Part shown: positions 11,546 to 49,060 of the stretch, in pieces | How the letters are laid out: each line of letters opens with the position of its first letter | How positions within the stretch are numbered: the stretch's first letter is position 1 | Virus record (IMG/VR): IMGVR_UViG_3300025770_000870 | Coordinates: 62,001-126,000 of that record | DNA length: 64,000 bases | Strand: one strand, 5' to 3' | Position numbers and translations under genes: made by a program | The notes under the pieces: generated by a model | What the model saw: the letters and a program-made list of their open reading frames with translations, nothing else | Told to the model about the DNA's origin: nothing | Databases searched by the model: none

Positions 11546-11812
11546 ATGATAATATTTAATACCATAAAGAAAGCAGAACATTATGTCTCCTACTGTAACA
11601 AGAAGGTTGATCGGGAAGAGGGTGGATATGATTGGTCCTCTGTAAGAACTTTTATAGAGGGTGAATATATTATATGCAATAGCTCCGGTGATGGTTGTGG
11701 TTGTGGGTGTGATGATTATATGTATGATTATAATGAAGTAATTGGTCGTATAAAATCGTATGATAAAAAAAGTATTCGTGGTAATAAACTAAAACAGATC
11801 ATCGGTTTTTGA
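11546..11812 (+). CDS. Hypothetical protein with C-terminal RxxK[IL] tag
   Basis: GCGCGC motif; ends IRGNKLKQIIGF. Confidence 0.7.
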   Translation: MIIFNTIKKAEHYVSYCNKKVDREEGGYDWSSVRTFIEGEYIICNSSGDGCGCGCDDYMYDYNEVIGRIKSYDKKSIRGNKLKQIIGF

Positions 11813-11880
11813 ACAGATTTGAACAGAAAAAAATCTACAATATCTCAATAAATAAATAATTTATATTAATATATATAAAT

Positions 11881-12390
11881 ATGTTATTAAAGTATAAACT
11901 TTTTTTAGAAAAAAAATTCGATTCTAGAAAAGATATTGAGGGTTATGTAGATGCCAATGAATTGGTTGGACAAAGACTTTGGTTTCATACCAATAGGACT
12001 AATCGTAATAACGGTAATAATGGGATGATTGGTGTTTATAGTACATCACCTTCTGGTAGAAAAAAGGGTTTAGCTGGTAGGTATACGAATGAAGTTAGAC
12101 TAACAGATCCTATTTTCTTTCAGACCTCAATAGCAGGATCTGATACTATAAAGGCTACAAAAAAGAGAGGTTTAATAGCAGGAGTTTCGGGTGTAGTTGT
12201 TGAAACAAATAATGATATAAATAATATGATTCCGATAACTTACAACCCCAACGAAAATGGGTATTTTCATGAGGTGGGAGATGTGGATGCAAAAGAAATA
12301 ATATCGGGTAGTGAGGTATATTTCAACTCAACAGAAGATGGACAATGGTTTATCTATGTGAAAAATCCCGTGTATCAATTACTCAAATAG
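11881..12390 (+). CDS. Leader-tagged hypothetical protein
   Basis: MLLKYKLFLE; TAATATATA at 11867-11875. Confidence 0.75.
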   Translation: MLLKYKLFLEKKFDSRKDIEGYVDANELVGQRLWFHTNRTNRNNGNNGMIGVYSTSPSGRKKGLAGRYTNEVRLTDPIFFQTSIAGSDTIKATKKRGLIAGVSGVVVETNNDINNMIPITYNPNENGYFHEVGDVDAKEIISGSEVYFNSTEDGQWFIYVKNPVYQLLK

Positions 12391-12595
12391 AAAATAAACC
12401 GAGTTCCGATTCAAATATTACTCCAAAAATATATAAGCCAAAAAATTGGTCGTTGAGTAGCACTGGATTTATAACAATACCAAATTATTGGATTGAAGGA
12501 AGACAACCAGATTTACGTTTAGATATCTACGACATATACTTTCTTAAAGTGGTAATATTAATTTATGATATGTTTATTTTTAATATATAACTATA

Positions 12596-13150
12596 ATGAA
12601 ACACCTTATAAGATATAATGAGTCTGATGAGTCTGATGATAATAAATTAGATATTAAGTATATAGAATCTTGCTTTGCTGAATTAATAGATAATTATATT
12701 GATTATAATAATGGTTATTTAGGAAGAAATAGTTGGACGAAAAATCCTATTACTAGTAGTTTAGAATATGGTGCTGAGGATTATTACAGTAATGAAAGTT
12801 GGTCTATTAGGTTATTACTTGAAGGAACACCAACAAATATGTCTGATGATCTATCCGATGGTAGTATAAAAACATCAGGGGTTCATAGATCATCATATAG
12901 AATTGGATATAAGTTAGGTAAGTTAGTCAAGGACGCAAATGAAAAACTTGAGATATTAAAGGAAATTGAAGTGGGTGTTAAACGAATTAAGGAAAAATAC
13001 CCATCATATAATATAGATTTCAATAAACAATTTACACATAGTAAGGATACACAAACCACGATACAAGAATTTATAGTTGTTGGTATTAGTCAACCACATT
13101 CAGATCGTTTACGACAGGTTAAATATAACTGGAAAGACGCGAATATTTAA
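12596..13150 (+). CDS. Leader-tagged paralog-family protein
   Basis: MKHLIRYNES; YIESCFAELID; TAATATATA at 12581-12589. Confidence 0.75.
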   Translation: MKHLIRYNESDESDDNKLDIKYIESCFAELIDNYIDYNNGYLGRNSWTKNPITSSLEYGAEDYYSNESWSIRLLLEGTPTNMSDDLSDGSIKTSGVHRSSYRIGYKLGKLVKDANEKLEILKEIEVGVKRIKEKYPSYNIDFNKQFTHSKDTQTTIQEFIVVGISQPHSDRLRQVKYNWKDANI

Positions 13151-13500
13151 AAGATAATTGTATTAATTTTATATCCTCTTTCAAACATTTTATAAGCTCT
13201 CAGAAAATCTTCTTGTTTCGTAAATAAGCTTATTAAATAGTTTTCAAATTCTACACCAGTGTAACCATCCATGAGCGAGTTTCTAATTCCTCCTACCTTT
13301 ATAACAATACCTTCATAATCAAAGACAGAATGATCAGTGTCTATATCAATACTAAAATTACTCAAAAGGAATCCTATGTGTTTCGCTTTTTCTAAGTATT
13401 CTAATCCGATTTTATCATCATAATCACCACACATTATATCATTGAGGTTTTCACTTAAACCTCCAAAAGTTTTAAATGGTGTTTTATCCAAATGTTTCAT
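13147..13500 (-). CDS. Hypothetical protein with C-terminal tag variant
   Basis: Ends ERGYKINTIIF; TATATTTG promoter at 13593-13600. Confidence 0.6.
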   Translation of the reverse strand: MKHLDKTPFKTFGGLSENLNDIMCGDYDDKIGLEYLEKAKHIGFLLSNFSIDIDTDHSVFDYEGIVIKVGGIRNSLMDGYTGVEFENYLISLFTKQEDFLRAYKMFERGYKINTIIF

Positions 13501-13624
13501 TTAATAAATTTACTGTGTATAATATAATCGACATACACATCAACCATATTAAAAACTTGTTAATATTTTCTTTATACTTTTTATACATATCACAAATATA
13601 AGGATTATTATTAATATATAACAT

Positions 13625-14056
13625 ATGAAACATCTCAAAAGAATAAATGAGTTATATCTAACATCAGATGTGTCTAGTGTTATAGATGATATATTATTGG
13701 AGATTAATGATATACCTAAGTTTGTTGGTCTTAATTGGAATCATACGGATCGTTTGGGTCGGGCATCTGAACATAGTTTTTTGGTTATTATTAAGTTGAG
13801 TGAGGGTATAGAAGATGGTATGGATTATGGTGTTGGTTTAGATGAGGAAATAACAGAAACTATTAAAAGGTTATTAGAATTTATGACAAGCAATCGATAT
13901 GAATACTTGATGGAATTTGGAACAGATAACATACCACCTGGTACTTCAAAAAAAGAATTAAGTGATTATATTAGGAAGTTTGAATATAGTGAATTATCTG
14001 ATAATGATTTAACTATGTGGGTGGATGAATTTATAAGAATAACTTTTACAAAATGA
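13625..14056 (+). CDS. Leader-tagged paralog-family protein
   Basis: MKHLKRINE; VIDDILLEIND; TAATATATA at 13612-13620. Confidence 0.75.
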   Translation: MKHLKRINELYLTSDVSSVIDDILLEINDIPKFVGLNWNHTDRLGRASEHSFLVIIKLSEGIEDGMDYGVGLDEEITETIKRLLEFMTSNRYEYLMEFGTDNIPPGTSKKELSDYIRKFEYSELSDNDLTMWVDEFIRITFTK

Positions 14057-14472
14057 GATACATGAAAACATATGAATCATTTGGGAATCCCTTTGGTAAC
14101 AGTCCGAGGGATAGACGAATCAAGTTGTACAGTTTCCCCAGGGCAACACTTTTACTTGAAATCGAGGATATTCTAAGAGAGTTAGAGGATAATAATATAC
14201 GTGTTGAGGTATATTTTTGGGATGGTGTTGAGGTTTTCTTAACCAGTAGAAACGAACATGAAGTTAGAAGAGGCTTACTAGCTCCTGATACATTCCCATA
14301 TGAGGTTATAAAACCTAATATAGAGCATCTAGTTTCTTTCTTAGAAGAAATTGGATATAAAATTAAAAGTATTCATAATATTGTTAATCTTGAATCAAGA
14401 GGATCAATAACTCAATATCCTGATTTGGATGGTGAAGAAATAGGTAGATTGGAATTTAGATTTATCAAATAA
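14053..14472 (+). CDS. Leader-tagged paralog-family protein
   Basis: MRYMKTYESF; IEDILRELED; ATGA overlap. Confidence 0.75.
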   Translation: MRYMKTYESFGNPFGNSPRDRRIKLYSFPRATLLLEIEDILRELEDNNIRVEVYFWDGVEVFLTSRNEHEVRRGLLAPDTFPYEVIKPNIEHLVSFLEEIGYKIKSIHNIVNLESRGSITQYPDLDGEEIGRLEFRFIK

Positions 14473-14653
14473 TTAATTACTTTATAAACAATACAACATT
14501 TAATTTTTAGTTCCATTTTTCTAATTCATATTCCTTTAAGGTTATCCAAATACCAAGTATTCTATGTTGTAAAGCTCTAGTAGTAACTAAACAAGTTGCC
14601 TTGCGGTTTCGGATAGTAAAAATATTTTTAGTTTTTATTCTATACATAGTTAA

Positions 14654-15013
14654 TTATTTTAAAATACTATTGATTTTTTCATCACGAATCTCTAATAGTA
14701 GTTGATCTTTATCAAACTCAGGGTAAGCAAATTCACCGACACATACTTGTGTGTGTCCATCTTTGACATAGAGTTCCCAAGCATCTCCAATACCTTGTCC
14801 AATACCAGATATCTTAAAAATATTATCTGGTTTGGTTTTAGAAAATTTAATTATATCTTCTTCGTATGAATACCACTCACACCATGAATCTGCGTCTGAA
14901 TCACCATATCTATCAAAGGCGTATTTAGCACTATCAGAAAAATTTCTAAATTTATTAATTAACTTATTACTACCCTCCACAATAGTAAATTGATACTTTG
15001 TTAAATATGACAT
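14654..15013 (-). CDS. Hypothetical phage protein with C-terminal tag
   Basis: Probable start MSYLTKY; ends EIRDEKINSILK. Confidence 0.7.
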   Translation of the reverse strand: MSYLTKYQFTIVEGSNKLINKFRNFSDSAKYAFDRYGDSDADSWCEWYSYEEDIIKFSKTKPDNIFKISGIGQGIGDAWELYVKDGHTQVCVGEFAYPEFDKDQLLLEIRDEKINSILK

Positions 15014-15070
15014 TAAACCAAATCTTTTATATCTTTGAATAAAAATAATAATCACCCCTCGATAATATCA

Positions 15071-15274
15071 TTAAACTTTATATTTTTCAAGGTAAGTATC
15101 AAATGTTTTATCACATAAATCATTTCTAAAACCTTTAATAATAGTCTTATAGAAATATCCCGTATGTCTTTTAGCATACAAGTCAATAACATTACTAGCG
15201 TTACCGCAATCATTCATAGTTTCACAACCAGAAATAATTTCAGTTACTTTATCAATTTCAAAATCTGTGTTCAT
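15071..15274 (-). CDS. Hypothetical protein
   Basis: 67-aa ORF; TACATTTG promoter at 15310-15317. Confidence 0.6.
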   Translation of the reverse strand: MNTDFEIDKVTEIISGCETMNDCGNASNVIDLYAKRHTGYFYKTIIKGFRNDLCDKTFDTYLEKYKV

Positions 15275-15355
15275 AGTTTATATTTTTTAATTATTACTTT
15301 ATTTATATACAAATGTAAGGATATTATCATACTAATACAAATTAATATATACTTT

Positions 15356-15496
15356 ATGGAAGGAATGAGGAAAATTATTATGTTTAGTCTTGTAATGATA
15401 GTGTTAAGTTCTTGTGGAGTACTCAAGGGTGGTAAAGGTAAATGTGAGTGTGAGGACTGGGGTCGAAGAGAGTCTGAAAAGACTGATAGTGTATGA
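15356..15496 (+). CDS. Small lipoprotein
   Basis: MRKIIMFSLVMIVLSSC lipobox; TAATATATA at 15343-15351. Confidence 0.6.
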   Translation: MEGMRKIIMFSLVMIVLSSCGVLKGGKGKCECEDWGRRESEKTDSV

Positions 15497-15882
15497 AATA
15501 CCTAAAAAAATTCAATGATATAAGATTCGAAATAGAAGAATCTGATTCAACTAAAATACGTATGTATGATGTTGATGAAAAAGTTGGTTATTCATCAGTA
15601 ACTATAAAGGATAATATTTTTGATAAATGGAATTTACATGATGATTTAGAAGTTGATCCGATAAAAAATACTAAAAGCTTATACATTCTAGGAATATCAA
15701 TGAGGAATAGGAGAACAGGTTATGGTTCTAATTTAATAAACTATATTGAGGAATATGCTAATAAGAAAGGATGTGAATACATCACACTAAGTTCTATTAC
15801 CGATGCTTTGGGGTTCTGGAAAAAAATGGGATATGAAGTTTATAGTATGGGTGATTACTATTCAATGTATAAGAAGTTATAA
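15493..15882 (+). CDS. Leader-tagged GNAT acetyltransferase
   Basis: MKYLKKFND; RRTGYGSNLI acetyl-CoA motif; ALGFWKKMGY. Confidence 0.85.
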   Translation: MKYLKKFNDIRFEIEESDSTKIRMYDVDEKVGYSSVTIKDNIFDKWNLHDDLEVDPIKNTKSLYILGISMRNRRTGYGSNLINYIEEYANKKGCEYITLSSITDALGFWKKMGYEVYSMGDYYSMYKKL

Positions 15883-15905
15883 ACCTTATTGATATTGCTT
15901 ATATA

Positions 15906-16229
15906 ATGTTTATGGATTTAGTAGAAATAAGATATGTTGGTGATAAGAGTTGGTCAGTTGTAACTCGATTCTTAGCAACAGGGATGTCTGGGATTGAAAT
16001 GAGAGAGATTGATAAAAATGGACCTAAATTAACTCTAATCAACAATCTAAATAAAGAATTTATCAAAGAGCGTACTTGTAATTGGGAGAAGGAGGATTAT
16101 GAATACACAACACCATGTGGTGTTAATTTCGATTGTGATAAAGTTACTAAAATTAACGATAATAACCTTGGTTATGTCCTCCACTACTGTCCAAATTGTG
16201 GTGGTAAGTTAGATTTAAATCTAATTTAA
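15906..16229 (+). CDS. Zn-ribbon protein
   Basis: TPCG...YCPNCGGKL. Confidence 0.6.
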   Translation: MFMDLVEIRYVGDKSWSVVTRFLATGMSGIEMREIDKNGPKLTLINNLNKEFIKERTCNWEKEDYEYTTPCGVNFDCDKVTKINDNNLGYVLHYCPNCGGKLDLNLI

Positions 16230-16238
16230 ATCTATTGG

Positions 16239-16706
16239 TTAACTTTTACCTATTCTCCATGCGTTTTTAACAACTCTTTTAATTTTAGTAGAATCTTCAT
16301 AGTTACCAATTACGACACCATCTTTGATAGTGAATGCGTGTGATGTAACTTGTAGTATGTAAGTACCTTTATCATATTCTTTTATGAAAGTACCAACAGT
16401 CATTTTACTCTTACCATTGTTAGTTTTTAAGTGGTTTTTATTAATGGTATTTACCGTTTTTCGATTTAATCTAAGGTTATCATTATTCATACCATTCATA
16501 CCTGGTGCGAATCCATATGTTCCTTTTTTATTTTTACGGCTGAATTTATTACAGACCCATTTATGTGATTTATCGTATGTCATACCAGATGCGGATGCAA
16601 TGGCTCTAACAACACAGTCATTATTTTCTTTTTTAGCAATAACCGAATCTCTGTATCCGTTAATCGCGGCTGATGAAGATGTATAAGGAATTTTTTTTGT
16701 TTTCAT
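16239..16706 (-). CDS. Conserved phage protein (NDCVVRAIA...HA), possible papain-like fold
   Basis: Cys in DCVVRA and His in SHAF. Confidence 0.6.
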   Translation of the reverse strand: MKTKKIPYTSSSAAINGYRDSVIAKKENNDCVVRAIASASGMTYDKSHKWVCNKFSRKNKKGTYGFAPGMNGMNNDNLRLNRKTVNTINKNHLKTNNGKSKMTVGTFIKEYDKGTYILQVTSHAFTIKDGVVIGNYEDSTKIKRVVKNAWRIGKS

Positions 16707-16759
16707 AGTAGTGATTTTTATTTCTACTAAGATACGGAATTTATATCAATTAAAAAAAT

Positions 16760-17272
16760 TTATTTATTAAGTATTTTATTAAGTTTAGTATCTCTTAGTG
16801 TTGATTTACCTATAATATTGTGTATTTTCTTCATTGATTTATCACAATTATCTTTTGAATTTTTATTAAATTCATTTTTATAATCAGCATACTTTTGGTA
16901 AAAGAATTTATAATCTTTTTCCTTTATATCTCCTTTGTGTGAGAAGAAGGTACCAGCTGATAAATAGATTGCGGATATTGTAAATATCCCACCTTCAATT
17001 TTATACTTTACTTTTAAGTCTACCTTATTTTTAGAAAATTTTATTTCTTCATAGTTCACTCCCAAATCCCAATTATCAATTTGTACTGAATGGAATATGT
17101 CCTCGAATGTGTCTTCAATATATTTGTCCTCGTTGAAGCTTTTTATTTCAACAAATTCATCCTTTATGTTTTTTGGAATTACTTTTGATTTTTTTCCTTT
17201 ATTCATCTTAATACCCAAATAGGAATATGTACATAATATGGCAATAATTCCTATAAGTAATAATATATTCAT
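16760..17272 (-). CDS. Membrane-anchored protein with C-terminal tag
   Basis: N-terminal TM; ends LRDTKLNKILNK. Confidence 0.7.
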   Translation of the reverse strand: MNILLLIGIIAILCTYSYLGIKMNKGKKSKVIPKNIKDEFVEIKSFNEDKYIEDTFEDIFHSVQIDNWDLGVNYEEIKFSKNKVDLKVKYKIEGGIFTISAIYLSAGTFFSHKGDIKEKDYKFFYQKYADYKNEFNKNSKDNCDKSMKKIHNIIGKSTLRDTKLNKILNK

Positions 17273-18229: not shown

Positions 18230-18487
18230 TTAATATATTCCTAATTTATTTAACTTTTTTATTCTATTATTAATTTTTTTTATTCTATACTGAGTATTTT
18301 TATAATTATTCATTATACAACTCTTCATAACAAGAGCCATATAGTCAAACTCTTTAGTGTTCTTGTTTGGTTTATAATGATGATAATGGTGTAACTTGGT
18401 TTTGTTAATAATGTCTTTTTTATTAATAAACCCAGTTATACCTGAATTTTTGACCAACCTTTCATATAAATCATCAAAATCTAACAT
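18230..18487 (-). CDS. Hypothetical protein with tag-like C-terminus
   Basis: Ends NRIKKLNKLGIY. Confidence 0.6.
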   Translation of the reverse strand: MLDFDDLYERLVKNSGITGFINKKDIINKTKLHHYHHYKPNKNTKEFDYMALVMKSCIMNNYKNTQYRIKKINNRIKKLNKLGIY

Positions 18488-20488: not shown

Positions 20489-20935
20489 ATGAAATACTTG
20501 AGAACTTATAAAATATTTGAGTCTGTTGATTTGGTTGAGTTGGAATCAACCGTGGATGATATATCTTTAGAGATAAAGGATTTGGGCTATGAAGTAATGA
20601 TTTATATGCTAAGGAACTTCGTTAGTGTTGAAGTAATATCAAAAAGGTCAGAAAATCTTTATTCTAAATGGACGCAAGATAGGGAGAATTTTTCAAAGAA
20701 GGAATATAATAAGTGTTCTGAGGTTTTGGATAGATTGGAAGATTTTTTGAAATCGGAAGGTATGTTAATTTATTCAAAGAACTTAATTCGGGTATCACAA
20801 GTTAATTACTCAAATTATTCACAATTCGAACATGGTGTATGTGATCAAGGGTATGATAGCACAGGTACTTGGGAATATAACGTGATGTATCATCTTCCAC
20901 CTCCAAAACCTTTATATCCAAGAAAAATAAAGTAA
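20489..20935 (+). CDS. Leader-tagged paralog-family protein
   Basis: MKYLRTYKIFES; VDDISLEIKDLGYEV. Confidence 0.75.
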   Translation: MKYLRTYKIFESVDLVELESTVDDISLEIKDLGYEVMIYMLRNFVSVEVISKRSENLYSKWTQDRENFSKKEYNKCSEVLDRLEDFLKSEGMLIYSKNLIRVSQVNYSNYSQFEHGVCDQGYDSTGTWEYNVMYHLPPPKPLYPRKIK

Positions 20936-25431: not shown

Positions 25432-25818
25432 ATGAAATATTTAAAGAAATTTTTCGAAGACCTTGAGGAAGCTCAAGAAGAAGTAGTACAGGCACAGAGT
25501 GAAGGTGATATGGATGCTTGTATTGAGGCTTGTAATAAATGTGCTGAGATATGTAAAAGGTGTGCTGATGAGTGTGCTAAGAATGATAATGAAGAGTGTG
25601 CTAAGAATTGTACAGAATGTGCTTTATTATGTGAATTATGTGCTACAGCTTGTGAGAGTGGATCAACTAGATCTAAAGATATCTGTGAGTTGTGTGTAGA
25701 TTGTTGTAAAGACTGTGTTGAGTCATGTGATGATTGTGGTTCAGAAACTTGTACAGAATGTTCAGCGGCTTGTAATGTTTGTATAGAAGAGTGTATGATG
25801 TGTCTTGAGTCCATGTAA
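25432..25818 (+). CDS. Leader-tagged Cys-rich four-helix bundle, copper-storage (Csp/DUF326)-like
   Basis: MKYLKKFFE; 25 Cys in CxxxCxxC helical repeats. Confidence 0.8.
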   Translation: MKYLKKFFEDLEEAQEEVVQAQSEGDMDACIEACNKCAEICKRCADECAKNDNEECAKNCTECALLCELCATACESGSTRSKDICELCVDCCKDCVESCDDCGSETCTECSAACNVCIEECMMCLESM

Positions 25819-27542: not shown

Positions 27543-27598
27543 TCTAAAAATTTGATTAGTTTATCATCTCTATTTAAATCTTTATATCCACTAAAATT
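27539..27598 (-). pseudogene. Orphan 3' end of a C-terminally tagged gene (..GYKDLNRDDKLIKFLD*)
   Basis: Fills the gap after the EEP gene; carries the RDxKL tag but no start codon. Confidence 0.4.
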
Positions 27599-27600
27599 AT

Positions 27601-28332
27601 TTACAAAATTATTATGATTGGTAAATGATCTGATAATTTTCTTTTATCATTTTTATATTCAAACTCAAAAACCTCAGAATGGTTTATCTTAATACCCCTT
27701 TCTACAAAGAAATGGTCATAACTATTTTTACTAATACTACCATCCCTTTTGAATGTGGTCGGCTCACCCACCAAAGGACATTGGAAATTTACCAATAGTG
27801 GTATATAAATTATATGTTTAGATGTTAGATTAAAATCCCCACAAAGTATTCCATCTTTATAGTTATATAAATGTTTTATTTCTCCTTGTGGGTTTTTTGA
27901 CGCTGGTACAATGTGAACTTGTCTTATTATAATTTCCTCACATTTATATTTGAAGTGAGCAATATAAGGTTCTCTATTAATCGAATCCTCTAATGTTACA
28001 TCTAAGTAAGCTGTGTCTAATTCAACATCTTTACTATAAAGGTAAGCGTATCTTTCTGTTCCTCTACCAGTAGTCTTGTCGGATATAACATAATTATAAT
28101 TTAATATGTTTGCTAATTGTATAATACAAGAGTCCCCATACTTATTTGTCACCAATTCCTGAATAGCTATTATATCAGCATTTGATTGTATCATAACATC
28201 AGCTATTGCTGGTACAATGGTATCTTTCTTGAATTTTGATTCTCCTAAATATTGTATATTCCAAGACATAATAACCTGAGAGAAGGTTATAGTTGGAAGT
28301 AAAAGTGATAGTATTAAGATTATTTTTTTCAT
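27601..28332 (-). CDS. Secreted endonuclease/exonuclease/phosphatase (DNase I-like)
   Basis: Signal peptide; SWNI, AIQE, GDFN, YDH, LSDHLP. Confidence 0.9.
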   Translation of the reverse strand: MKKIILILSLLLPTITFSQVIMSWNIQYLGESKFKKDTIVPAIADVMIQSNADIIAIQELVTNKYGDSCIIQLANILNYNYVISDKTTGRGTERYAYLYSKDVELDTAYLDVTLEDSINREPYIAHFKYKCEEIIIRQVHIVPASKNPQGEIKHLYNYKDGILCGDFNLTSKHIIYIPLLVNFQCPLVGEPTTFKRDGSISKNSYDHFFVERGIKINHSEVFEFEYKNDKRKLSDHLPIIIIL

Positions 28333-37073: not shown

Positions 37074-37832
37074 TTATTTTAAGTGGGGTAATACTTCTTT
37101 TGCGTAGTAATCATCAAACCCTTCAAGTAATCCAGTAATTGGAGTACTCTTATCAGTTATAATGATTTCATCAATGAAACCAAAGTCTAAAGCTTCTTGT
37201 GAGTTTAACCACTTATCTCTTCTAGCACTTTCTAATACTTCATCAAAAGATTTACCACTATTCTCAGCTAACATCTTAAATAAGATATAATTATACTTCT
37301 CAGATTCCATTTGTGAGATGCGATTATCAGCAACATGTCCTTGTGCACCACTCGATACTTGGTGAATCATAACCTTTGAGAAATTCAAAGATGAACGTTT
37401 GCCTTTTGTACCAGATGATAATAGAATAGAACCCATAGATGCTGCCATACCTGTGTTGATAGTTTCAATATCACAATCGATATATCTCATTACATCAACC
37501 ATAGATAATCCACTTTTAACTGAACCACCTGGTGAATCAATGTGCATCCTAATATCTCTTTTCTCCGCTGCTCCTTCTTCTACGGAATCAAGATACATCA
37601 ATTGTGCTTGTACAACAGTTGACATATTATCATTCACAACACCAGCAACCCATAAAATTCTTTCTCTCATTAATCTAGAGAAAATATCCATTTGAGTTAC
37701 TCTCATTTCTCTTTCTTCAAGTATGTATGGTGTCATACTATTCTCCATTTGTTTTTGGTAATAGTGTAAGTTCATAGAAGATAACCCCTCACTCTTTGCG
37801 TACTTATTAAAATCTTTCCCGTAATCTATCAT
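37074..37832 (-). CDS. clpP: ATP-dependent Clp protease proteolytic subunit
   Basis: MDIFSRLMRERIL, SPGGSV, AASMGS, MIHQ, EALDFGFID. Confidence 0.97.
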   Translation of the reverse strand: MIDYGKDFNKYAKSEGLSSMNLHYYQKQMENSMTPYILEEREMRVTQMDIFSRLMRERILWVAGVVNDNMSTVVQAQLMYLDSVEEGAAEKRDIRMHIDSPGGSVKSGLSMVDVMRYIDCDIETINTGMAASMGSILLSSGTKGKRSSLNFSKVMIHQVSSGAQGHVADNRISQMESEKYNYILFKMLAENSGKSFDEVLESARRDKWLNSQEALDFGFIDEIIITDKSTPITGLLEGFDDYYAKEVLPHLK

Positions 37833-42722: not shown

Positions 42723-43502
42723 TTATACTCTCTCTTCCCAAAGTTCACCAATATTAAGTAATCGATGTTGTATACCATACATATTTATAGTAGCACTTCT
42801 GTGGAAGTGACCATAATAGTGGTGTGTGATATCATTACCATTTAATCTCAATAAATGAAACATATCTGTTATTTGATTTCGTTCAAATAACAGATCGGTT
42901 TTTAATTCTGTATCACCAGTATCTCTAATTATACCTTCAACAAAAGGACCAAGTCCAATGCTATTATCAACAGGACAATAATCGGGTGAGTTATGTGTAA
43001 CTACAATATCGATGTCTTTCATGTTAGCTATTTTATCACGATCTAATACGAATACTTCATCTTTCCACCAACTTTGACCTGGGTGTATTGTATAGTCACC
43101 TTTTCTTTGTTTATCAGTTCTTCTCCAATTTCTATCAACACTCACAGCACCACCAACACAAAGTATATTTTTTGTTTCGGTAAATCCTAATGTATCTAAT
43201 TCTAAATTAAGGATGGTGTAGTCTGGAATAAGTTTAATATTACTAAATCCAAATGGGTCATTATCGAAATAAGGTTTGAAGTCATGATTACCACGAATTG
43301 CGTATAACATGATGTTATTCTTCTCAAGAATAGTATTTACATATCCTAATGTTCGGCGCTCTTTCTCAAGAGTAGCAAAACCAACACCAAAGTCACCAAC
43401 TTGAATTATGATAGCATCTTTTATATCATACTGCTTAACATATTGATTAATCAAGTTAAAATTTCCGTGGATATCACCGAGATATAAAATTCTTTTTTTC
43501 AT
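42723..43502 (-). CDS. Calcineurin-like metallophosphoesterase
   Basis: GDIHG, GDFG, RGNHD, VTH, GHFH; start MKKRIL 4 nt after TATATTTG. Confidence 0.92.
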   Translation of the reverse strand: MKKRILYLGDIHGNFNLINQYVKQYDIKDAIIIQVGDFGVGFATLEKERRTLGYVNTILEKNNIMLYAIRGNHDFKPYFDNDPFGFSNIKLIPDYTILNLELDTLGFTETKNILCVGGAVSVDRNWRRTDKQRKGDYTIHPGQSWWKDEVFVLDRDKIANMKDIDIVVTHNSPDYCPVDNSIGLGPFVEGIIRDTGDTELKTDLLFERNQITDMFHLLRLNGNDITHHYYGHFHRSATINMYGIQHRLLNIGELWEERV

Positions 43503-43568
43503 ATTACAAATATAAGTAAAATTTACAGAAGGCAAAAATTATTTATAGTATATCATGATGTTACATGA

Positions 43569-43781
43569 TTAACTTATACTTTTGAACCTTTTTTTACCAC
43601 TCTCTACATTAGAATTCCAATTATCGAGGGGTCTAGCATGGTATGATCCGAAAAGAATTGATTTGTAGATAACTAGCTTATCACCATTCTCGCTATGTGG
43701 GGCCATAAATAAAAATTCATATACACCACCTTTATAATGCCTGTATTTCCCACCAGGCTCGGGATATTTTACTTTTTCCAT
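43569..43781 (-). CDS. DUF1653-family protein
   Basis: YRHYKGG.YE...A.HSE...VIY...ARP. Confidence 0.85.
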   Translation of the reverse strand: MEKVKYPEPGGKYRHYKGGVYEFLFMAPHSENGDKLVIYKSILFGSYHARPLDNWNSNVESGKKRFKSIS

Positions 43782-43812
43782 ATAAATAATATGTAGTAAG
43801 TAAGTGAAAGTT

Positions 43813-44256
43813 TTAATTTTTTATTAAATATCTCACAACAGAATCCCAATTTTCGAATTTATCAGAACCAAAGTGTAACCACTCTCCTTCAAATTCTGGT
43901 TGTCCATCAGCGTCACTATCATCAATTAGGTATTCACCCTTCAATAATGATTTGTCACCACACAGAACCATTCTTTGAACAACGTCAAATCCTAAGTGGT
44001 CCCAAATCCATTGTGCCTTTTCTGTGAAACAATTTACGTTTCTAAATGAAGGTCTTGTTAGAATCCAAACATCATATTTTTCTTCTAGTTTCCTAAATGA
44101 ATCAATTGCACCAGGCATTTCTTCTAATTTAAGAAAAAATCCCCATTGAGATTGTGGATATTTTTGCTCAGGATATTTTTCTAAAGCTTCTGATGCGGCT
44201 TTGAAAAAATCACAAAGGACTCCATCCATATCTACGTAAACTTTTTTTCTTTTCAT
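43813..44256 (-). CDS. 5'(3')-deoxyribonucleotidase (HAD, NT5C-like)
   Basis: VYVDMDGVLCDF; EK..W; DKSLLKG.YLIDD. Confidence 0.92.
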   Translation of the reverse strand: MKRKKVYVDMDGVLCDFFKAASEALEKYPEQKYPQSQWGFFLKLEEMPGAIDSFRKLEEKYDVWILTRPSFRNVNCFTEKAQWIWDHLGFDVVQRMVLCGDKSLLKGEYLIDDSDADGQPEFEGEWLHFGSDKFENWDSVVRYLIKN

Positions 44257-44411
44257 AATATTTCTTTTAATTTTCTACTTCGAAAAATGTTACTTTCTAT
44301 GAAATAACAAGTAAGGTACTTATAAGTGTGTTCATAATATAATATACAGAATTAATATATAATATTATAATTATAGTTGATAATTATAGATTAGTTTAAA
44401 TAAGGAACAAC

Positions 44412-44945
44412 ATGAAACATATAAAAAGATTTGATGAGGTTATTAAAGTCGATATTAAAGTCGGTGATACTGTCCTTGGTGGTCGATTTAAGAATAAGAA
44501 AACCCTTGTTAAGAAAATAGGTAAAAATAAAAAAGGTGATATAACTATTAATGATAAGCCTTTGCTTAAATATAGAATCATAAAAGAAGATGTTGATATT
44601 AAAGATGTTGTTACTTATTACTTATCACATTTAATAGATGATGGATTCGTAGCTTATGATGGAGATGAATTTATAAGAATTTTCAAACCAAAGTATGGTG
44701 ATGTTTATACTTATACGAATTTAATAGAATTTAATTTTGCTGAAATAGCTGGTGATATAATCAGGTTTGTTAATTCAGTGGACGATATTAAAAATATATC
44801 ATATATGACAATTGCTGAAAAACCAAAAGAGTATAAAATGCAAGGTGGTGGTGTGTTATTTGATAATTTGGAAAGAAATGTTATTGATATTAATAATTTA
44901 GAACAAGTCAATATGGATATGTATTCATTGACTATATTATTTTAA
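44412..44945 (+). CDS. Leader-tagged protein (KOW-like plus paralog-family domain)
   Basis: MKHIKRFDE; IKVGDTVLGGRFKNK; YLSHLIDDGF. Confidence 0.75.
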   Translation: MKHIKRFDEVIKVDIKVGDTVLGGRFKNKKTLVKKIGKNKKGDITINDKPLLKYRIIKEDVDIKDVVTYYLSHLIDDGFVAYDGDEFIRIFKPKYGDVYTYTNLIEFNFAEIAGDIIRFVNSVDDIKNISYMTIAEKPKEYKMQGGGVLFDNLERNVIDINNLEQVNMDMYSLTILF

Positions 44946-44997
44946 TATAATGTAAACTTTTACATGGTCAAGAAATAAAAGAAATAAATCTTTAAAA

Positions 44998-45261
44998 ATG
45001 TCAAAATCAGAAAACGTTAAAGTTAAGAAGAAAACCACTAAGAAACCTAGTGCTAAAAAAACTACTCAGAAGAAAGTAGTTAAGAAACCTAAAGTTATTA
45101 AAGACCTAAGTTTATGGGCCTTAAACGAGAATAACGAAATCGAAAAAGTTATTGTACCACTTAAATATAAATTGGATTATATTAAAAGATTCGGTGTTAT
45201 GGAAATAACAAATAAAACGGAGTTAAAAACTTGGTTAGAAAATATTAAATTAGTAGGATGA
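44998..45261 (+). CDS. Lys-rich hypothetical protein
   Basis: Histone-like KKTTKK N-terminus. Confidence 0.65.
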   Translation: MSKSENVKVKKKTTKKPSAKKTTQKKVVKKPKVIKDLSLWALNENNEIEKVIVPLKYKLDYIKRFGVMEITNKTELKTWLENIKLVG

Positions 45262-45704
45262 TTAAAATATCAATGGGTTCGGACCATGCTGGTTTTGAAT
45301 TAAAACAGGAAATTAAAAAATACCTTCACACACTTGGTAATAAAGTTGAAATAAGTGATAAGGGTTGTTTTGTTGAGGAAAGGTGTGACTACCCAGACTA
45401 TGCACATTTAGTTGCAGAAGATGTTGAAAAAGATATATGTGATTTTGGTATATTAGTTTGTGGATCAGGTAATGGTATAAATATGTCAGCTAATAAATGG
45501 GATGGTGTTAGATCTGCATTATGTTGGAACTCCGAAATAGCTAATATGGCGAGACTTCATAACGATGCTAATATACTAACACTACCTGGGAGATATATTT
45601 CGGTAGAAGACGCAATAGAGTGTGTGTGTGAGTTTATGAAGACCGAATTTGAAGGTGGTAGACACTCCGATAGAGTTGAAAAAATATCTATTTGTAGATC
45701 CTAA
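45258..45704 (+). CDS. rpiB: Ribose-5-phosphate isomerase B
   Basis: GSDHAG, DYPD, CGSGNG, ARLHNDAN, FEGGRH..RV. Confidence 0.97.
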   Translation: MIKISMGSDHAGFELKQEIKKYLHTLGNKVEISDKGCFVEERCDYPDYAHLVAEDVEKDICDFGILVCGSGNGINMSANKWDGVRSALCWNSEIANMARLHNDANILTLPGRYISVEDAIECVCEFMKTEFEGGRHSDRVEKISICRS

Positions 45705-45809
45705 AATTGGTAAAAATAAATTCGATGAAATTTATTAAAATTTCAAGGTTTTGGTATAAAGTGATAATATAAAGTTAATAGATATATTACAAAAAATAAC
45801 ATCTTACTT

Positions 45810-46043
45810 ATGAAAAATTTCGATAACAACCTTAGAGAATTTACTATTTCACATTTAAATGGAAATAAAATAGATGAAGATTATAAATTTCTTGTTGAGA
45901 AATTTATTTTTTATATGGATGCTTATTGTGCTGAAATGAAAACCACAGATAGTGAAGTTTTAAACAATGATAAGTTATATAAAACGGTATCTTCTCTTTT
46001 TAAGAGTGTTATTATGGAGAAGCAACTTAATATGGTTGTTTAA
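45810..46043 (+). CDS. Hypothetical protein
   Basis: 77-aa ORF. Confidence 0.6.
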   Translation: MKNFDNNLREFTISHLNGNKIDEDYKFLVEKFIFYMDAYCAEMKTTDSEVLNNDKLYKTVSSLFKSVIMEKQLNMVV

Positions 46044-46445
46044 TTAAAAGTTTGTGTGTGCTACACCATCACCGAATGTAACATATTCCTTTTCTTTTTC
46101 TTTTGTAAAAGAAAGATATTTATCAATAGGATAATGTTCACGATCTTCGGTATCTTTTTCGAACCATTCTGATATTTTCATTAAGTCACGTATCCTCTCA
46201 ATTATATCTTTTAGGTTTGAAGAATCTGGTGTTTCCTTATATTCTTTCCATTGAATTCTAACAAATATTTGATCACTTTTGGGTAACATCTTACTAACAT
46301 TTATAGAAAATCCTTCGTCTTCCAATTCCATACAAATATCCTTTATCGTTTGTACCAAACAATCTGTTTCTTCGTTATCATATCCCATTCTACAAGGTTT
46401 GGAAACGTTTGAGTTAAATTCATTTATAGATTTTAGATATCTCAT
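46044..46445 (-). CDS. Leader-tagged paralog-family protein
   Basis: MRYLKSINEF; IKDICMELEDEGFSINV. Confidence 0.75.
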   Translation of the reverse strand: MRYLKSINEFNSNVSKPCRMGYDNEETDCLVQTIKDICMELEDEGFSINVSKMLPKSDQIFVRIQWKEYKETPDSSNLKDIIERIRDLMKISEWFEKDTEDREHYPIDKYLSFTKEKEKEYVTFGDGVAHTNF

Positions 46446-46963
46446 TTTTCGTAAGGAGCAAATATGTGTTCCCAGGGGATAATATCTTCTGTGTGATACA
46501 TAGCAATATCAAATCTAATACCATGTTCACCATCACCTTGAAATACCGAGGACTCTAAAGAAAAATTAAGTATTTTGAATTTATACCCAAAATCTTTTAT
46601 TTTAATTAACGAATCAGAAAACTCATTAAAGAATTCAATTGTACTAGACATTTGTTTATCATTTACATCTCTAATTGATGATGATAAATCATCAAATCTT
46701 AATCTAAGTGTATATCCTTTATAAAGAGGTTTATCTATGTAATTTATTCTATCTCTAACTTCAAAGTTTTCATCAACTAAAGTATGTGTTGAGTTTTTAA
46801 TTCCTATAATTTTACCACCTAAATCAACCAATTCTAAGAAAAATTCTTTTAACTCACCATCTCTATTATATTCAGATCTCATGATAGCTAATTCAAACCA
46901 ACCATCTCCCTCGCCCGATTCGTTTATCATCTCTACATTATTATAATTCTTTAAGTATTTCAT
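46442..46963 (-). CDS. Leader-tagged paralog-family protein
   Basis: MKYLKNYN..MINES; LKEFFLELVDLG; TAATATATA at 46968-46976. Confidence 0.75.
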   Translation of the reverse strand: MKYLKNYNNVEMINESGEGDGWFELAIMRSEYNRDGELKEFFLELVDLGGKIIGIKNSTHTLVDENFEVRDRINYIDKPLYKGYTLRLRFDDLSSSIRDVNDKQMSSTIEFFNEFSDSLIKIKDFGYKFKILNFSLESSVFQGDGEHGIRFDIAMYHTEDIIPWEHIFAPYEK

Positions 46964-46973
46964 TAACTATATA

Positions 46974-47194
46974 TTATTTTCCTTTGAAGAAATTCCAAAA
47001 TCCACCGACTTTCTTTTTAGGATATTCAACTGCTTGTGGTTTGATTGGTTCTTCTGGTTTATTTAACTCTCCATTACTATACCACATATTTCTCTTATCT
47101 TTAGATAGTCTTGGTATTCTGGGGAATCGGTGTTGACTCCATTTTTATTTAATATCGATTTAGCGTATGCTATATTTTCATTAATAATACTCAC
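46974..47194 (-). pseudogene. Internally deleted/frameshifted gene
   Basis: GTG-SIINENIAYAKSILNK...REICG then frameshift to ...PKKKVGGFWNFFKGK*; TTATATATA box 4 nt upstream. Confidence 0.55.
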
Positions 47195-47211
47195 GTTGTA
47201 TATATAAAAAC

Positions 47212-47246
47212 AAAAAAACCCAATCACTTTTGGTGATTGGGTTTTT
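47212..47246. terminator. Intrinsic terminator after the FKBP gene
   Basis: AAAAACCCAATCAC-ttttg-GTGATTGGGTTTTT. Confidence 0.9.
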
Positions 47247-47265
47247 ATATCAATATGTTTGGTTA

Positions 47266-47712
47266 TTAAGCCTCTGTTGTCTCAGTAGCAGTTGCTTGAA
47301 TATCAATAACTTCAATGTCAAATTGGATATCTTTCCCAGCTAACGGGTGATTACCATCAATCACAATGTGATTTTCTTTAATCTCTTTAACTTTTACTGG
47401 TGTACTTTGACCATTGTCTGATTGTGCTTCAAGTGTTAATCCAACTTCAACATCCCCAGGCATTTGGTCTTTAGGTACTTCTACAATTAGGTCTTCTCTT
47501 ACTGGTCCGTAAGCATCTTCTGGTGTTAAAAACTCTGTGTTGACTTTATCTCCTATATTTTTACCGATTAAAACGTCTTCAAATCCCGGAATTATTTGTC
47601 CAGAACCAATTTGAAACGTTAAGGGATCTCTTCCCTGTGATGTGTCAAAAGTTGTTCCATCAGTTAATTTACCAGTATAATGAACGCTAACTACATTTCC
47701 ATTTTCTATCAT
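47266..47712 (-). CDS. FKBP-type peptidyl-prolyl isomerase (SlyD/SlpA-like)
   Basis: VHYTGKL.DG..FD, IIPGFE, PEDAYG, IDGNHPLAGK. Confidence 0.95.
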   Translation of the reverse strand: MIENGNVVSVHYTGKLTDGTTFDTSQGRDPLTFQIGSGQIIPGFEDVLIGKNIGDKVNTEFLTPEDAYGPVREDLIVEVPKDQMPGDVEVGLTLEAQSDNGQSTPVKVKEIKENHIVIDGNHPLAGKDIQFDIEVIDIQATATETTEA

Positions 47713-47759
47713 AATAATTAATTTATTTTTAAGTTATATTATTAATTCTTTTTTTGTTG

Positions 47760-47882
47760 TTATAATTGGTTAATTAATAACCATTTTTTATATTTAAGTG
47801 TGTTACTTAGAAAGTCATCTATTTCATATTCAACTGAATCTGTTGGTACCTCAATTATTAATATATTATCTTTTATAATCAT
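47760..47882 (-). CDS. Small hypothetical protein (40 aa, not in ORF track)
   Basis: MIIKDNILIIEVPTD...; TAATATATA at 47935-47943. Confidence 0.45.
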   Translation of the reverse strand: MIIKDNILIIEVPTDSVEYEIDDFLSNTLKYKKWLLINQL

Positions 47883-47973
47883 AATTCTTAAATGTTTGTA
47901 TATTTATATATTTTTCTTAAATGTTTTTGTTAATTATATATTAAACTTTTTGTTATTATTAATTAGAATTAAT

Positions 47974-48663
47974 GTGAGAGAATCTTTCGAAGAATATAAA
48001 AAAACAATAGAAACCTTAATTATCAACTTCAAATATCTATATGATGGTGATGTTAAATCATCTAGTAATAAATCATACTCTGGTAGTATATCACATAAAA
48101 ACACTTCACCTAGTTTTGTTATAAATTGTATAAATCAAATATACGATGAAAGTATTCAATCGATGATCGATAAGTCAATACCAATGAGTATAGGATTAAA
48201 AACTGAACCATTGATAGGTAAACCAAGTAATGTGGCTGATAATATATTTTATTATATTGATAAATTAAAAACAAACTCATTCAAACCTCTTTATGTTTTT
48301 TGTTCATATAATGGAAGAAAATTATTTGGTATAACTAAAGAAATTAATAAAAACAAGCCTTTCCCGGGACACTTTTATGATATAGAAAAGTATCATAGTA
48401 GATCATATGACTTATATTTATCACCTATACTAATTAATGATAAAGAAGATGATATTGAGATTTATGTAACTGACAAATCAATACAAAGCTTAGTTTATTC
48501 TATACAAAATATGGATTATAAAATTTCAAAAGATGATGAATCATACAAACATACAATGTCTTATCATTTTTATGATTGTGACTTTACCTGTTATAAATTG
48601 ATAATCAAGGATGTATCTAAATGGAGGGATGAGAAAATAAATGAAATATTAAATGAGAATTGA
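47974..48663 (+). CDS. Hypothetical protein with C-terminal tag
   Basis: Probable GTG start RESFEEY; ends WRDEKINEILNEN. Confidence 0.65.
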   Translation: MRESFEEYKKTIETLIINFKYLYDGDVKSSSNKSYSGSISHKNTSPSFVINCINQIYDESIQSMIDKSIPMSIGLKTEPLIGKPSNVADNIFYYIDKLKTNSFKPLYVFCSYNGRKLFGITKEINKNKPFPGHFYDIEKYHSRSYDLYLSPILINDKEDDIEIYVTDKSIQSLVYSIQNMDYKISKDDESYKHTMSYHFYDCDFTCYKLIIKDVSKWRDEKINEILNEN

Positions 48664-49060
48664 TTGTGATAGTTTGGATTTTGGATTGGAATGTTATGAT
48701 CCAAGTTCTTTAGAGGAACGAAATAGATTAAAATCTAGTAAATTAGTTAAGGATTTATTGAAAATAAATAATAAAATGGAACCTAGAAGAAACTATATGG
48801 TTATATCAATGAATGTCTTTAATCTATTAGAGTATCACGATAGATTTGAACATATAAAATTATCTAGTAAAAAAGAAATAGGCCCATTAACACTTGTTGG
48901 TTATATAGGTGGTTTAGATTGTTATGTAGATTTAAATATGAAACATAATAACATACTATTACATTACGATAAACAAGTTATTCGTAATCTTAGATTAGAA
49001 TCTATATTAGATGATAGTAATATTATTGATGATGAGGTTGAAATTGAAGTGATAATTTAA
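48653..49060 (+). CDS. Protein resembling a fragment of gp23-type major capsid protein, with tag
   Basis: NYMVIS..V...LE....F...VGYIGG..CYVD; IRNLRLESIL. Confidence 0.5.
   Translation: MRIDCDSLDFGLECYDPSSLEERNRLKSSKLVKDLLKINNKMEPRRNYMVISMNVFNLLEYHDRFEHIKLSSKKEIGPLTLVGYIGGLDCYVDLNMKHNNILLHYDKQVIRNLRLESILDDSNIIDDEVEIEVII

Follow-up and report, generated by a model that had tools for sequence, protein, structure and literature searches.

A recurrent C-terminal peptide tag on unrelated proteins of huge bacteriophages

About one gene in eight of a clade of 0.5-0.64 Mb bacteriophages ends in the same ten-residue helix (h-R-[DE]-x-K-[LI]-x-x-[IL]-[LIG]), which is carried by otherwise unrelated proteins inferred to be mostly early-expressed. 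This looks like an undescribed protein address label with a putative common receptor; no prior description of it was found.

The starting point was a sequence-only reading of a 64,000-nucleotide stretch (hereafter the window; positions 62,001 to 126,000 of IMG/VR record IMGVR_UViG_3300025770_000870), in which a shared C-terminal tag, R-[DEGN]-x-K-[IL]-x-x-[IL], had been noticed on eight unrelated frames devoid of the N-terminal leader. The observation was confirmed and proved to be much larger than first described. The accompanying interpretation was that of a second addressing code, an amphipathic helix docking early proteins to a common partner, for example as a degron/adaptor signal for the phage ClpP or as a compartment-localisation tag. 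It was supported in part only, as is detailed below: a second, protein-level addressing code on unrelated proteins is supported, whereas the partner to which it would dock is putative.

Distribution of the tag in the window and in related genomes

In order to establish which of the eight cases were genuine, each one was re-examined. All the peptides were found in the sequence; five are clean members, two are marginal and one, described as an orphan, is considered a chance occurrence. The features are as follows (window coordinates).

11546-11812 (+): tagged gene, 88 aa, ending RGNKLKQIIGF; the tag RGNKLKQII is encoded at 11777-11803 and is followed by two more residues and the stop; identical in genome G001, one of the five genomes compared below.
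13147-13500 (-): tagged gene, 117 aa, ending RGYKINTIIF; the tag RGYKINTII is encoded at 13153-13179 and is followed by one more residue and the stop.
14654-15013 (-): tagged gene, 119 aa from the ATG at 15013, ending RDEKINSILK; the tag RDEKINSIL is encoded at 14660-14686; residues 1-106 form a phrog_6306 domain that also occurs in unrelated phages, where it carries no tag.
16760-17272 (-): tagged gene, 170 aa, ending RDTKLNKILNK; the tag RDTKLNKIL is encoded at 16769-16795; an N-terminal membrane anchor is followed by positive charges, so that the tagged end should be cytoplasmic.
47974-48663 (+): tagged gene, 229 aa from a GTG start, ending RDEKINEILNEN; a small predicted HK97-fold protein, whose model residues 1-219 align to capsid and encapsulin shells; the tag, a separate C-terminal helix in the model, is encoded at 48625-48651 and is conserved in 119 metagenomic homologues.
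48653-49060 (+): marginal case, 135 aa; a tag-like RNLRLESIL (IRNLRLESIL with the preceding residue) lies 16 residues from the end and is followed by an acidic tail, with a PSSM score of 9 against 20-27 for members; the gene is conserved in genomes G002 and G003.
18230-18487 (-): marginal case, 85 aa, ending NRIKKLNKLGIY; it has the K-L-x-x-L-G-I ending but lacks the R-[DE]-x-K register and scored below the PSSM cut-off.
27548-27571 (-): the orphan NRDDKLIKFLD, not a member; it lies in an out-of-frame, 34-residue stop-to-stop frame without ATG that overlaps the 3' end of gene 27601-28332, the orthologue of which ends in the same way.
37074-37832 (-): ClpP paralogue 2, 252 aa, one part of the candidate receptor machinery; the ClpC-like unfoldase, ClpP1 and ClpS lie outside the window.

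Next, we examined whether the motif is more frequent at C-termini than internally, a point that had been set beforehand as a test of the observation. With the original pattern, the 242 kb contig containing the window has 16 matches in 364 ORFs. Twelve of them lie within 8 residues of the C-terminus, against 0.24 expected from the internal rate (Fisher P=1.5e-12), and seven of these 12 lie outside the window, which constitutes an independent test. The ORFs were obtained with our own greedy ATG-only caller; however, stop positions, and hence C-termini, do not depend on the choice of start. With a slightly relaxed pattern, C-terminal versus internal counts were 39/13 for G001 (P=1e-40), 11/5 for G002, 26/7 for G003 (P=7e-27), 117/23 for LR745206 (P=4e-123) and 121/27 for LR756502 (P=4e-124). 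The last two are complete relatives (634 and 642 kb), in which the tagged genes represent 12.5% of the total. Over the six contigs, the enrichment P values range from 1e-12 to 1e-124. Furthermore, the motif emerged without any given pattern: a scan of gapped tripeptides in the last 15 residues of the two complete genomes placed RD.K (5e-93), R..KL, R..KI and I..IL on top. In contrast, an equally AT-rich Bacteroidota phage, Cellulophaga phi19:3 (40 kb read), has no C-terminal tag.

Properties of the tag and of its carriers

To determine whether the carriers belong to one protein family, 77 of them were compared by blastp, and they fell into 68 unrelated body clusters. Pfam and PHROG scans of 74 carriers found only scattered, different families, and no Pfam or PHROG family covers the tag. 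The bodies range from 41 to 731 aa and are mostly small, acidic (median pI 5.4) and cytoplasmic. They include two HK97/MCP-like proteins, riboflavin kinase, BtpA-like and MazG-like enzymes, and membrane-anchored proteins; in four carriers, the charge distribution of the N-terminal anchor puts the tag in the cytoplasm.

Synonymous codon usage at the R, D, K, L and I residues of the tag equals genome usage: Arg is encoded by AGA, CGT, AGG and CGA, and Leu and Ile use all their codons, in genome-wide proportions. Selection therefore acts on the peptide. In the 77-aa family the tag is the most conserved stretch, and in the HK97-like carrier it is kept in the 119 homologues down to about 42% identity. 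In AlphaFold models, the tag has a pLDDT below 50 in the 77-aa family, and of 63-69 in the HK97-like carrier against about 90 for the body, where it lies beyond the structurally aligned residues 1-219.

The extended consensus is [K/h]-x-x-h-R-[DE]-x-K-[LI]-x-x-[IL]-[LIG]-x-stop. Position 2 is D or E in 58 of 77 carriers, and 0-10 residues follow motif position 9 (mode 1; 37 of 77), the last residue being mostly K, N, D or E unless the ending is L-G-I. With only 3-4 aliphatic residues, no aromatic ones and an acidic residue at position 2 in most carriers, the tag does not have the features of a MinD/FtsA-type membrane-targeting helix, which is basic and strongly hydrophobic without fixed acidic residues; moreover, some carriers already have a transmembrane anchor.

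The claim that the tagged genes lack the N-terminal leader MKYLKxF also held: across five genomes, 2 genes carry both elements against about 28 expected. The two classes are associated with different promoters. In their own upstream gap, tagged genes show 27 host-type TAnnTTTG motifs against 5 [AT]ATATATA motifs, and leader genes 0 against 85. By transcription unit, the counts are 128/48 against 8/188 (odds ratio 63, P=4e-48); 48 tagged genes lie in phage-type promoter units. The [AT]ATATATA motif also precedes the portal, prohead protease and MCP genes. That the tagged genes are early is inferred from promoter motifs alone.

Possible functions of the tag

Our reading is that the tag is a portable short linear motif of about 10-14 residues at the very C-terminus, forming an amphipathic helix outside the folded body, one face of which presents the invariant Arg, the Lys and three aliphatic side chains. 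In this view, it has been appended to more than 60 unrelated proteins in a clade of huge Bacteroidota phages (Mahaphage). The analysis itself established that selection acts on the peptide rather than on the DNA, that the tag is portable between unrelated bodies, that it lies outside the folded core, which implies exposure, that it is linked to the promoter class taken as early, and that it excludes the leader, which belongs to the late, head-gene class. On the other hand, the docking of all carriers through this helix to one common receptor is inferred, as would be any Clp-dependent shortening of protein half-life.

As receptor, we favor the phage's own Clp machinery. The phage encodes a full Clp set, present and conserved in G001, LR745206 and LR756502: a ClpC-like unfoldase lacking the N-domain but keeping the ClpP-binding VGF loop, two ClpP and a ClpS. 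The degron/adaptor proposal of the sequence-only reading has therefore a concrete candidate. The tag would hand early proteins over to this machinery, possibly with an unidentified adaptor, for timed removal once the phage-type promoters have switched the unfoldase on, or alternatively would tether them as adaptors. ClpS in three genomes and the ClpC-like gene in G001 carry the phage-type motif, although that of the ClpC-like gene is degenerate in the two complete genomes. A catalytic receptor fits better than a stoichiometric one, because more than 100 different clients share the label. However, direct evidence for any receptor is lacking: the one complex prediction (ClpC-like residues 1-690, ClpP1 and a 77-aa carrier) scored 0.00, which we do not read as evidence either way. 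The N-terminal 40 residues of the ClpC-like protein are poorly conserved and are not an obvious tag-binding site, and the HK97/MCP-like proteins and the enzymes seem odd substrates for planned destruction. We are highly confident in the shared docking label, whereas the Clp part is possible but doubtful, so that the statement as a whole remains tentative.

A non-proteolytic localisation label, in the manner of an NLS, a PTS1 signal or a microcompartment encapsulation peptide, remains equally possible on present evidence. The tag would then sort early proteins to a phage-built or host structure, candidates being a replication or assembly compartment, the cell pole or the entry site, or a conserved host hub such as RNA polymerase or the ribosome. 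The exposed terminal helix on more than 60 unrelated bodies is equally compatible with this reading, membrane-anchored carriers could tether such a structure, metabolic enzymes and HK97-like proteins fit gathering better than destruction, and the separation from the late leader class suggests two destinations. However, no candidate structure was found: there is no tubulin/PhuZ, and nothing recognisable as a shell gene apart from the HK97-like protein that itself carries the tag. A stoichiometric hub for more than 100 client species would have to be very abundant.

In a broader and more novel reading, the largest known phages would run a proteome-wide, two-code sorting system. The leader, on about 8-10% of genes (late promoter class), would send proteins into the capsid, and the tag, on about 12% of genes (host-promoter class), would send early proteins to a second destination, either a phage-encoded ClpC/ClpP timer erasing the early programme or an unrecognised phage-built compartment. 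This would be the first viral analogue of an NLS- or PTS1-like signal, or of a dedicated degron system, operating on more than 100 clients. This broader reading is possible but doubtful.

A capsid or scaffold targeting peptide, which would bind the procapsid interior so that carriers are packaged and injected, is unlikely. The P22 scaffolding protein ends Y-R-K-L-K-A-K-L-K-G-I-R and binds coat through Y292, R293 and K296 (PMC9965877), with the same h-R-x-x-K ... G-I-x-stop layout as the tag; two carriers are themselves HK97/MCP-like, and T4 shows that unrelated injected proteins can share one short targeting peptide (PMC3012670). However, tag positions 2, 5 and 8 differ from P22, the carriers are acidic and four are membrane-anchored. 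Furthermore, it is the leader class that shares the promoter motif of the head genes, so the leader is the better capsid code, and the two codes exclude each other.

Similarly, a generic self-association helix, driving oligomerisation, mixed assemblies or condensates among carriers, is unlikely. The helix is short and amphipathic with charged flanks, monomer models leave it unpacked, and many carriers are very small proteins that might need oligomerisation. However, an invariant Arg and a near-invariant Lys across more than 60 unrelated bodies and five genomes point to one fixed binding site, 3-4 aliphatic residues are few for a stable coiled coil, and uncontrolled mixing of about 120 proteins seems costly.

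A clamp-binding, PIP-like motif is very unlikely: although the polar-x-x-h-x-x-h-h spacing of positions 2, 5, 8 and 9 equals that of a PIP box and two conserved carriers, of 77 and 78 aa, lie in the replication module, between the helicase, primase-like and DNA polymerase genes, positions 8 and 9 are I, L or G instead of aromatic, the bacterial beta-clamp motif QL[SD]LF does not fit, no gp45-type or beta-clamp domain was found in any of the four contigs searched, and more than 100 clamp clients, among them membrane proteins and kinases, is implausible. Finally, a by-product of AT-rich composition (30% G+C, rich in K, I, N and L), of a nucleotide element at gene 3' ends (promoter, terminator, coupling or recombination site; many tagged genes lie in tight arrays with overlapping stop and start codons) or of one divergent paralogous family is contradicted by the 20- to 50-fold lower internal frequency in the same proteins, by the AT-rich phage devoid of tags, by codon usage and by the unrelated bodies.

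Comparison with known systems

Clp degrons and adaptor tethers (the ssrA tag, the SspB C-terminal ClpX-binding peptide, MecA-ClpC) are short C-terminal peptides delivering unrelated proteins to a Clp unfoldase/ClpP protease. Known Clp degrons are not conserved helices with fixed Arg and Lys, and ssrA-type recognition reads the free carboxylate and the last nonpolar, LAA-like residues. The present tag has no such end, lies at a variable distance from the C-terminus, and is accompanied by an unfoldase without the N-domain that binds MecA, ClpS or phospho-arginine.

The P22 coat-binding helix and encapsulin cargo-loading peptides are also extreme C-terminal peptides docking a protein to a common partner. 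P22 uses an aromatic residue, Arg and Lys in the same i, i+1, i+4 register, and encapsulin peptides are, like the tag, shared by unrelated cargo. However, the hydrophobic positions differ from P22, there is no G-S-L core as in encapsulin peptides, the expression class is mostly not that of the shell genes, and some carriers are membrane-anchored.

The T4 capsid targeting sequence (CTS) of the internal proteins is a peptide of about 10 residues shared by otherwise unrelated, fast-evolving small phage proteins, acting purely as an address (PMC3012670). It is N-terminal, is cut off by the prohead protease at an h-x-E site, and belongs to late head assembly. The tag is C-terminal without such a site, belongs to the host-promoter class, excludes the leader and marks about 12% of all genes rather than a handful, whereas the N-terminal leader of this phage (MKYLKxF..E) does fit the CTS type.

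Lastly, the poxvirus ankyrin/PRANC (F-box-like) multigene families are large sets of variable viral host-interaction proteins sharing one small C-terminal module that links them to a proteolytic machine. PRANC is a domain of about 30-40 residues binding host Skp1, while the tag has about 10 residues and its bodies are not repeat proteins. The poxvirus families are concentrated in variable genome regions, and here the tagged arrays cluster around the record ends of LR745206 and LR756502.

Genomes examined and frequency of the C-terminal tag

First, the genomic context of the tag was established. The 241,918 bp virus contig that carries the window at its bases 62001-126000 (G000, 29.9% G+C) belongs to a tailed phage, as shown by Pfam and PHROG hits to a baseplate spike, a portal, a prohead protease and a gp23-like major capsid protein (MCP). 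From position 62,447 onward, G000 is the same sequence as the first 179 kb of G001, a 483,262 bp IMG/VR contig (98% complete), while the first 62 kb of G000 (1-62446) have no match in G001. As the two contigs overlap by 179 kb and extend in opposite directions, the genome is at least about 546 kb. A JGI metagenome contig of 816,658 bp carries the same gene module and, if entirely viral, would exceed the largest published phage genome. The nearest GenBank records are two complete uncultured phage genomes, LR745206 (634,780 bp) and LR756502 (642,428 bp). Genomes of 634 and 642 kb were described as members of the Mahaphage clade, predicted to infect Bacteroidetes (PMC7162821). G001, two partial relatives (G002, 116 kb; G003, 155 kb) and both complete genomes were analyzed in full. 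ORFs were called with a single, crude greedy ATG-only procedure, which gave 91-95% coding under genetic code table 11.

The sequence-only reading had proposed that unrelated genes of the window lacking the N-terminal leader share a C-terminal motif, and this observation held. All the cited peptides were found in the sequence, of which five are clean members, two are marginal and one, presented as an orphan, is taken as a chance occurrence.

11546-11812 (+), clean member
13147-13500 (-), clean member
14654-15013 (-), clean member
16760-17272 (-), clean member
gene starting at a GTG at 47974 and ending at 48663 (+), clean member
48653-49060, marginal case
18230-18487, marginal case
27548-27571 (-), the 'orphan', an out-of-frame stretch without a start codon inside the end of another gene, whose orthologue ends in the same way

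In order to test whether the motif is more frequent at C-termini than internally, a criterion set beforehand, its positions were compared. With the original pattern, G000 contains 16 matches in real ORFs, of which twelve lie within 8 residues of the stop, against 0.24 expected from the internal rate (Fisher P=1.5e-12). Seven of these twelve lie outside the window and so were not used to define the pattern. With a slightly relaxed pattern, the C-terminal versus internal counts were 39/13 in G001, 11/5 in G002, 26/7 in G003, 117/23 in LR745206 and 121/27 in LR756502, with P values reaching 4e-124. In addition, a scan without any given pattern, in which all gapped tripeptides in the last 15 residues were compared with internal 15-mers of the two complete genomes, ranked RD.K first (5e-93), followed by R..KL, R..KI, I..IL, D.KI and L..LG. 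By contrast, 40 kb of an equally AT-rich Bacteroidota phage, Cellulophaga phi19:3, contain no C-terminal tag. So 6-12.5% of all genes in this clade end in the motif.

In LR745206 (1-45 kb and 580-634 kb) and LR756502 (1-50 kb and 585-642 kb), tagged genes pile up in long same-strand arrays of small genes on both sides of the record start, which is one region in a circular genome. This resembles variable host-interaction gene arrays. Outside the window, immediately after the stop codon of the tagged gene at G000 137431-137664 (-), the tag-coding words AAAAAATAGACGATAT recur, and the next gene (137055-137447) carries an internal tag-like RGSKIDNIL, which may be a trace of how tags spread by local duplication.

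Anatomy, carriers and conservation of the tag

The logo obtained from 77 carriers is [K or hydrophobic](-4)-x-x-hydrophobic(-1)-R1-[D/E]2-x-K4-[L/I]5-[N/K/E/D]6-[K/E/Q]7-[I/L]8-[L/I/G]9-x10-stop. Half of the carriers have exactly one residue after position 9, the range being 0-10. When position 9 is Gly, position 10 is hydrophobic, which gives the frequent ending K-L-x-x-L-G-I. A link with double-glycine leaders and C39 peptidases was rejected, as Gly is not conserved after the motif. A 705-aa protein in the baseplate/tail region (window 56013-58130, +) ends in a Peptidase_C39_2 domain (E=5e-14), an unexplained papain-like peptidase in a virion module. On a helical wheel, positions -1, 1, 4, 5, 8 and 9 are inferred to fall on one face and the variable positions 3, 6, 7 and 10 on the other, which describes a docking helix with Arg and Lys inside the binding face. 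A resemblance to the first helix of Rho_N/SAP was set aside, since, as inferred from their consensus sequences, the register is off by one residue and there is no second helix.

Next, we examined whether the signal resides in the protein or in the DNA. Arg is encoded by AGA, CGT, AGG and CGA, and Leu and Ile by all their codons, in the proportions of the whole genome. Selection therefore acts on the amino acids, and DNA-level explanations were rejected.

Once the tag is removed, the 77 carriers form 68 blastp clusters, and Pfam and PHROG scans of 74 of them found no common family. The hits were diverse and comprised a phrog_6306 domain, a MazG-like pyrophosphatase, DUF7336, a riboflavin kinase, a BtpA-like protein, an MCP-like 250-aa protein (G001 144179-144931; blastp 6e-12 to the major head protein, weak Gp23 Pfam hit) and four proteins with an N-terminal membrane anchor whose flanking charges put the tagged end in the cytoplasm. 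A weak NUMOD4 hit on one carrier (E=0.36) was considered as noise. Carriers are small (median about 108 aa) and acidic (median pI 5.4).

The window gene 47974-48663 (+) encodes 229 aa and has 119 metagenomic homologues of about 224-234 aa. Its AlphaFold model (pLDDT 81) is an HK97 fold over model residues 1-219, for which VIA-align gave Z scores of 10.1 to T4 gp23 and 9.5 to gp24, followed by HK97 prohead and encapsulins. The tag is a separate last helix (model residues 219-232) with lower confidence. This small predicted HK97-fold protein is conserved across the clade in addition to the 576-aa gp23-like MCP. Like the MCP-like 250-aa carrier, it could be a vertex protein, a decoy or a separate shell.

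In the family of this HK97-like protein, the tag survives down to about 42% identity, with Arg, Ile and Leu invariant in the 18-sequence alignment. In the 77-aa family next to the DNA polymerase gene, E-x-R-D-K-K-I-D-D-I is the most conserved stretch, yet AlphaFold gives it pLDDT below 50. High conservation without a place in the monomer fold is what is expected of a motif that folds on a partner. Among reciprocal best hits the tag is usually kept (28 of 36 between G001 and LR745206). However, many apparent losses are degenerate tags in which K4 is replaced, so that our counts are lower bounds. The phrog_6306 body occurs without a tag in Streptomyces, Vibrio, Sinorhizobium and Cellulophaga phages. 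The tag was therefore added in this clade.

Relation to the N-terminal leader and to upstream motifs

The leader, M-[KR]-[YH]-[LI]-[KR]-x-[FY] followed within a few residues by Glu (MKYLKTFE...), occurs on 55, 75 and 96 genes of G001, LR745206 and LR756502, respectively. Among many others, it was seen in the window at the following positions.

5080-5376, leader gene
14053-14472, leader gene
15493-15882, leader gene
20489-20935, leader gene
25432-25818, leader gene

Only 2 genes carry both signals, where independence predicts about 28. The two classes also differ in what lies upstream. TAnnTTTG, the -7 box of the Bacteroidota primary sigma factor, is found before tagged genes, whereas [AT]ATATATA is found before nearly all leader genes, and also 25-35 nt before the portal, prohead protease and MCP genes in up to four genomes. 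In a gene's own upstream gap, the TAnnTTTG:[AT]ATATATA counts were 27:5 for tagged genes and 0:85 for leader genes. When each gene was assigned to the nearest promoter-bearing gap of its same-strand run, the counts were 128:48 against 8:188 (odds ratio 63, P=4e-48), with other genes in between at 515:991. Two promoter-like classes thus split the genome, TAnnTTTG (host type) and [AT]ATATATA (phage type, about half of all genes). The MCP and prohead protease genes (G001 135766 and 137993, with their orthologues in LR745206, LR756502 and G002) also share a conserved AAAAATCCACC element about 30 nt upstream of the box. A rare third motif, T[TA]AAACTTT, precedes the HK97-like gene (window 47974) in five genomes and several ClpP genes in G001, LR756502, G002 and G003. 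It was found upstream of 35 of 2,535 genes, about three times the chance rate, and may mark a middle class.

From these promoter motifs alone, we infer that tagged proteins are mainly early, host-polymerase products and that leader proteins are made with the heads. The leader, with its putative protease site, then looks like the counterpart of the T4 capsid targeting sequence, which is the only thing shared by the diverse injected internal proteins of T4 (PMC3012670).

Putative receptor and comparison with known addresses

The sequence-only reading had interpreted the motif as a second addressing code, an amphipathic helix docking early proteins to a common partner, such as a degron or adaptor signal for the phage ClpP or a localisation tag, and this was partly supported. 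The C-terminal enrichment, the unrelated bodies, the selection on the amino acids, the near exclusion of the leader and the link with TAnnTTTG are results of the analysis, while the early expression, the geometry of the docking face, the binding of the tag to any receptor and the identity of that receptor are inferred.

The phage encodes a complete Clp set, conserved in both complete genomes: a 704-aa ClpC-like unfoldase with two AAA modules, a UVR-type middle domain and the VGF loop that docks on ClpP, but no Clp_N domain; two ClpP paralogues with intact Ser and His motifs; and a ClpS.

window 37074-37832 (-), one of the two ClpP paralogues
G001 68605-69270, 118393-118674 and 315339-317453, further loci of the Clp set

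ClpS, and in G001 the ClpC-like gene, carry the phage-type promoter motif. A role of ClpP as prohead protease was rejected, as the head module has its own phrog_207 protease next to the portal and MCP genes, and ClpP1 lies among replication genes, between the helicase and the primase-like gene. A label on more than 100 different clients would be easier to serve with a catalytic machine than with a stoichiometric hub, and early proteins would be the natural things to clear. For this reason, hand-over to the phage Clp protease is ranked first, although only as a tentative possibility. A complex prediction of the ClpC-like protein (1-690), ClpP1 and a 77-aa carrier, made without controls and with a poorly folded partner, scored 0.00, which weighs neither for nor against this reading. 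The motif is, however, unlike ssrA-type degrons, the N-terminal acidic segment of the ClpC-like protein, considered as the receptor, is poorly conserved among three genomes, and no phage tmRNA with a similar tag peptide was found by ARAGORN. A non-proteolytic localisation label is about as likely.

Capsid targeting has an attractive precedent in the tail of the P22 scaffold, Y-R-K-L-K-A-K-L-K-G-I-R, which binds coat through Y292, R293 and K296 (PMC9965877). It is nevertheless disfavoured by the promoter class, the exclusion from the leader class and the membrane-anchored carriers. Clamp binding (no gp45-slide_C or DNA_pol3_beta_3 hit in four contigs), a cytoskeletal hub (no tubulin domain found), membrane binding and a single divergent family were tested or reasoned through and set aside.

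Most genes of huge phages have no annotation. A ten-residue label marking one gene in eight, and a second label marking one in ten, split about a fifth of this dark proteome into two classes with different promoters and therefore probably different fates. The tag peptide thereby offers a bait for its receptor, tagged reporters a measure of turnover or location, and the label a means to predict early host-takeover and anti-defence candidates in uncultured phages. If the receptor is the phage Clp protease, this would be a virus-encoded programme of timed self-proteolysis; if it is a compartment, the tag would be a new sorting signal. Either way, it could serve as a portable tool for targeting proteins in Bacteroidota.

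Full-text literature searches found no description of the tag or of the leader in huge phages. A short terminal address shared by unrelated proteins is known from T4, encapsulins and degrons. Four points are new: the motif itself, its C-terminal position on proteins inferred to be early, its scale (one gene in eight in the largest phage genomes known), and its pairing with a second, putatively late, N-terminal code.
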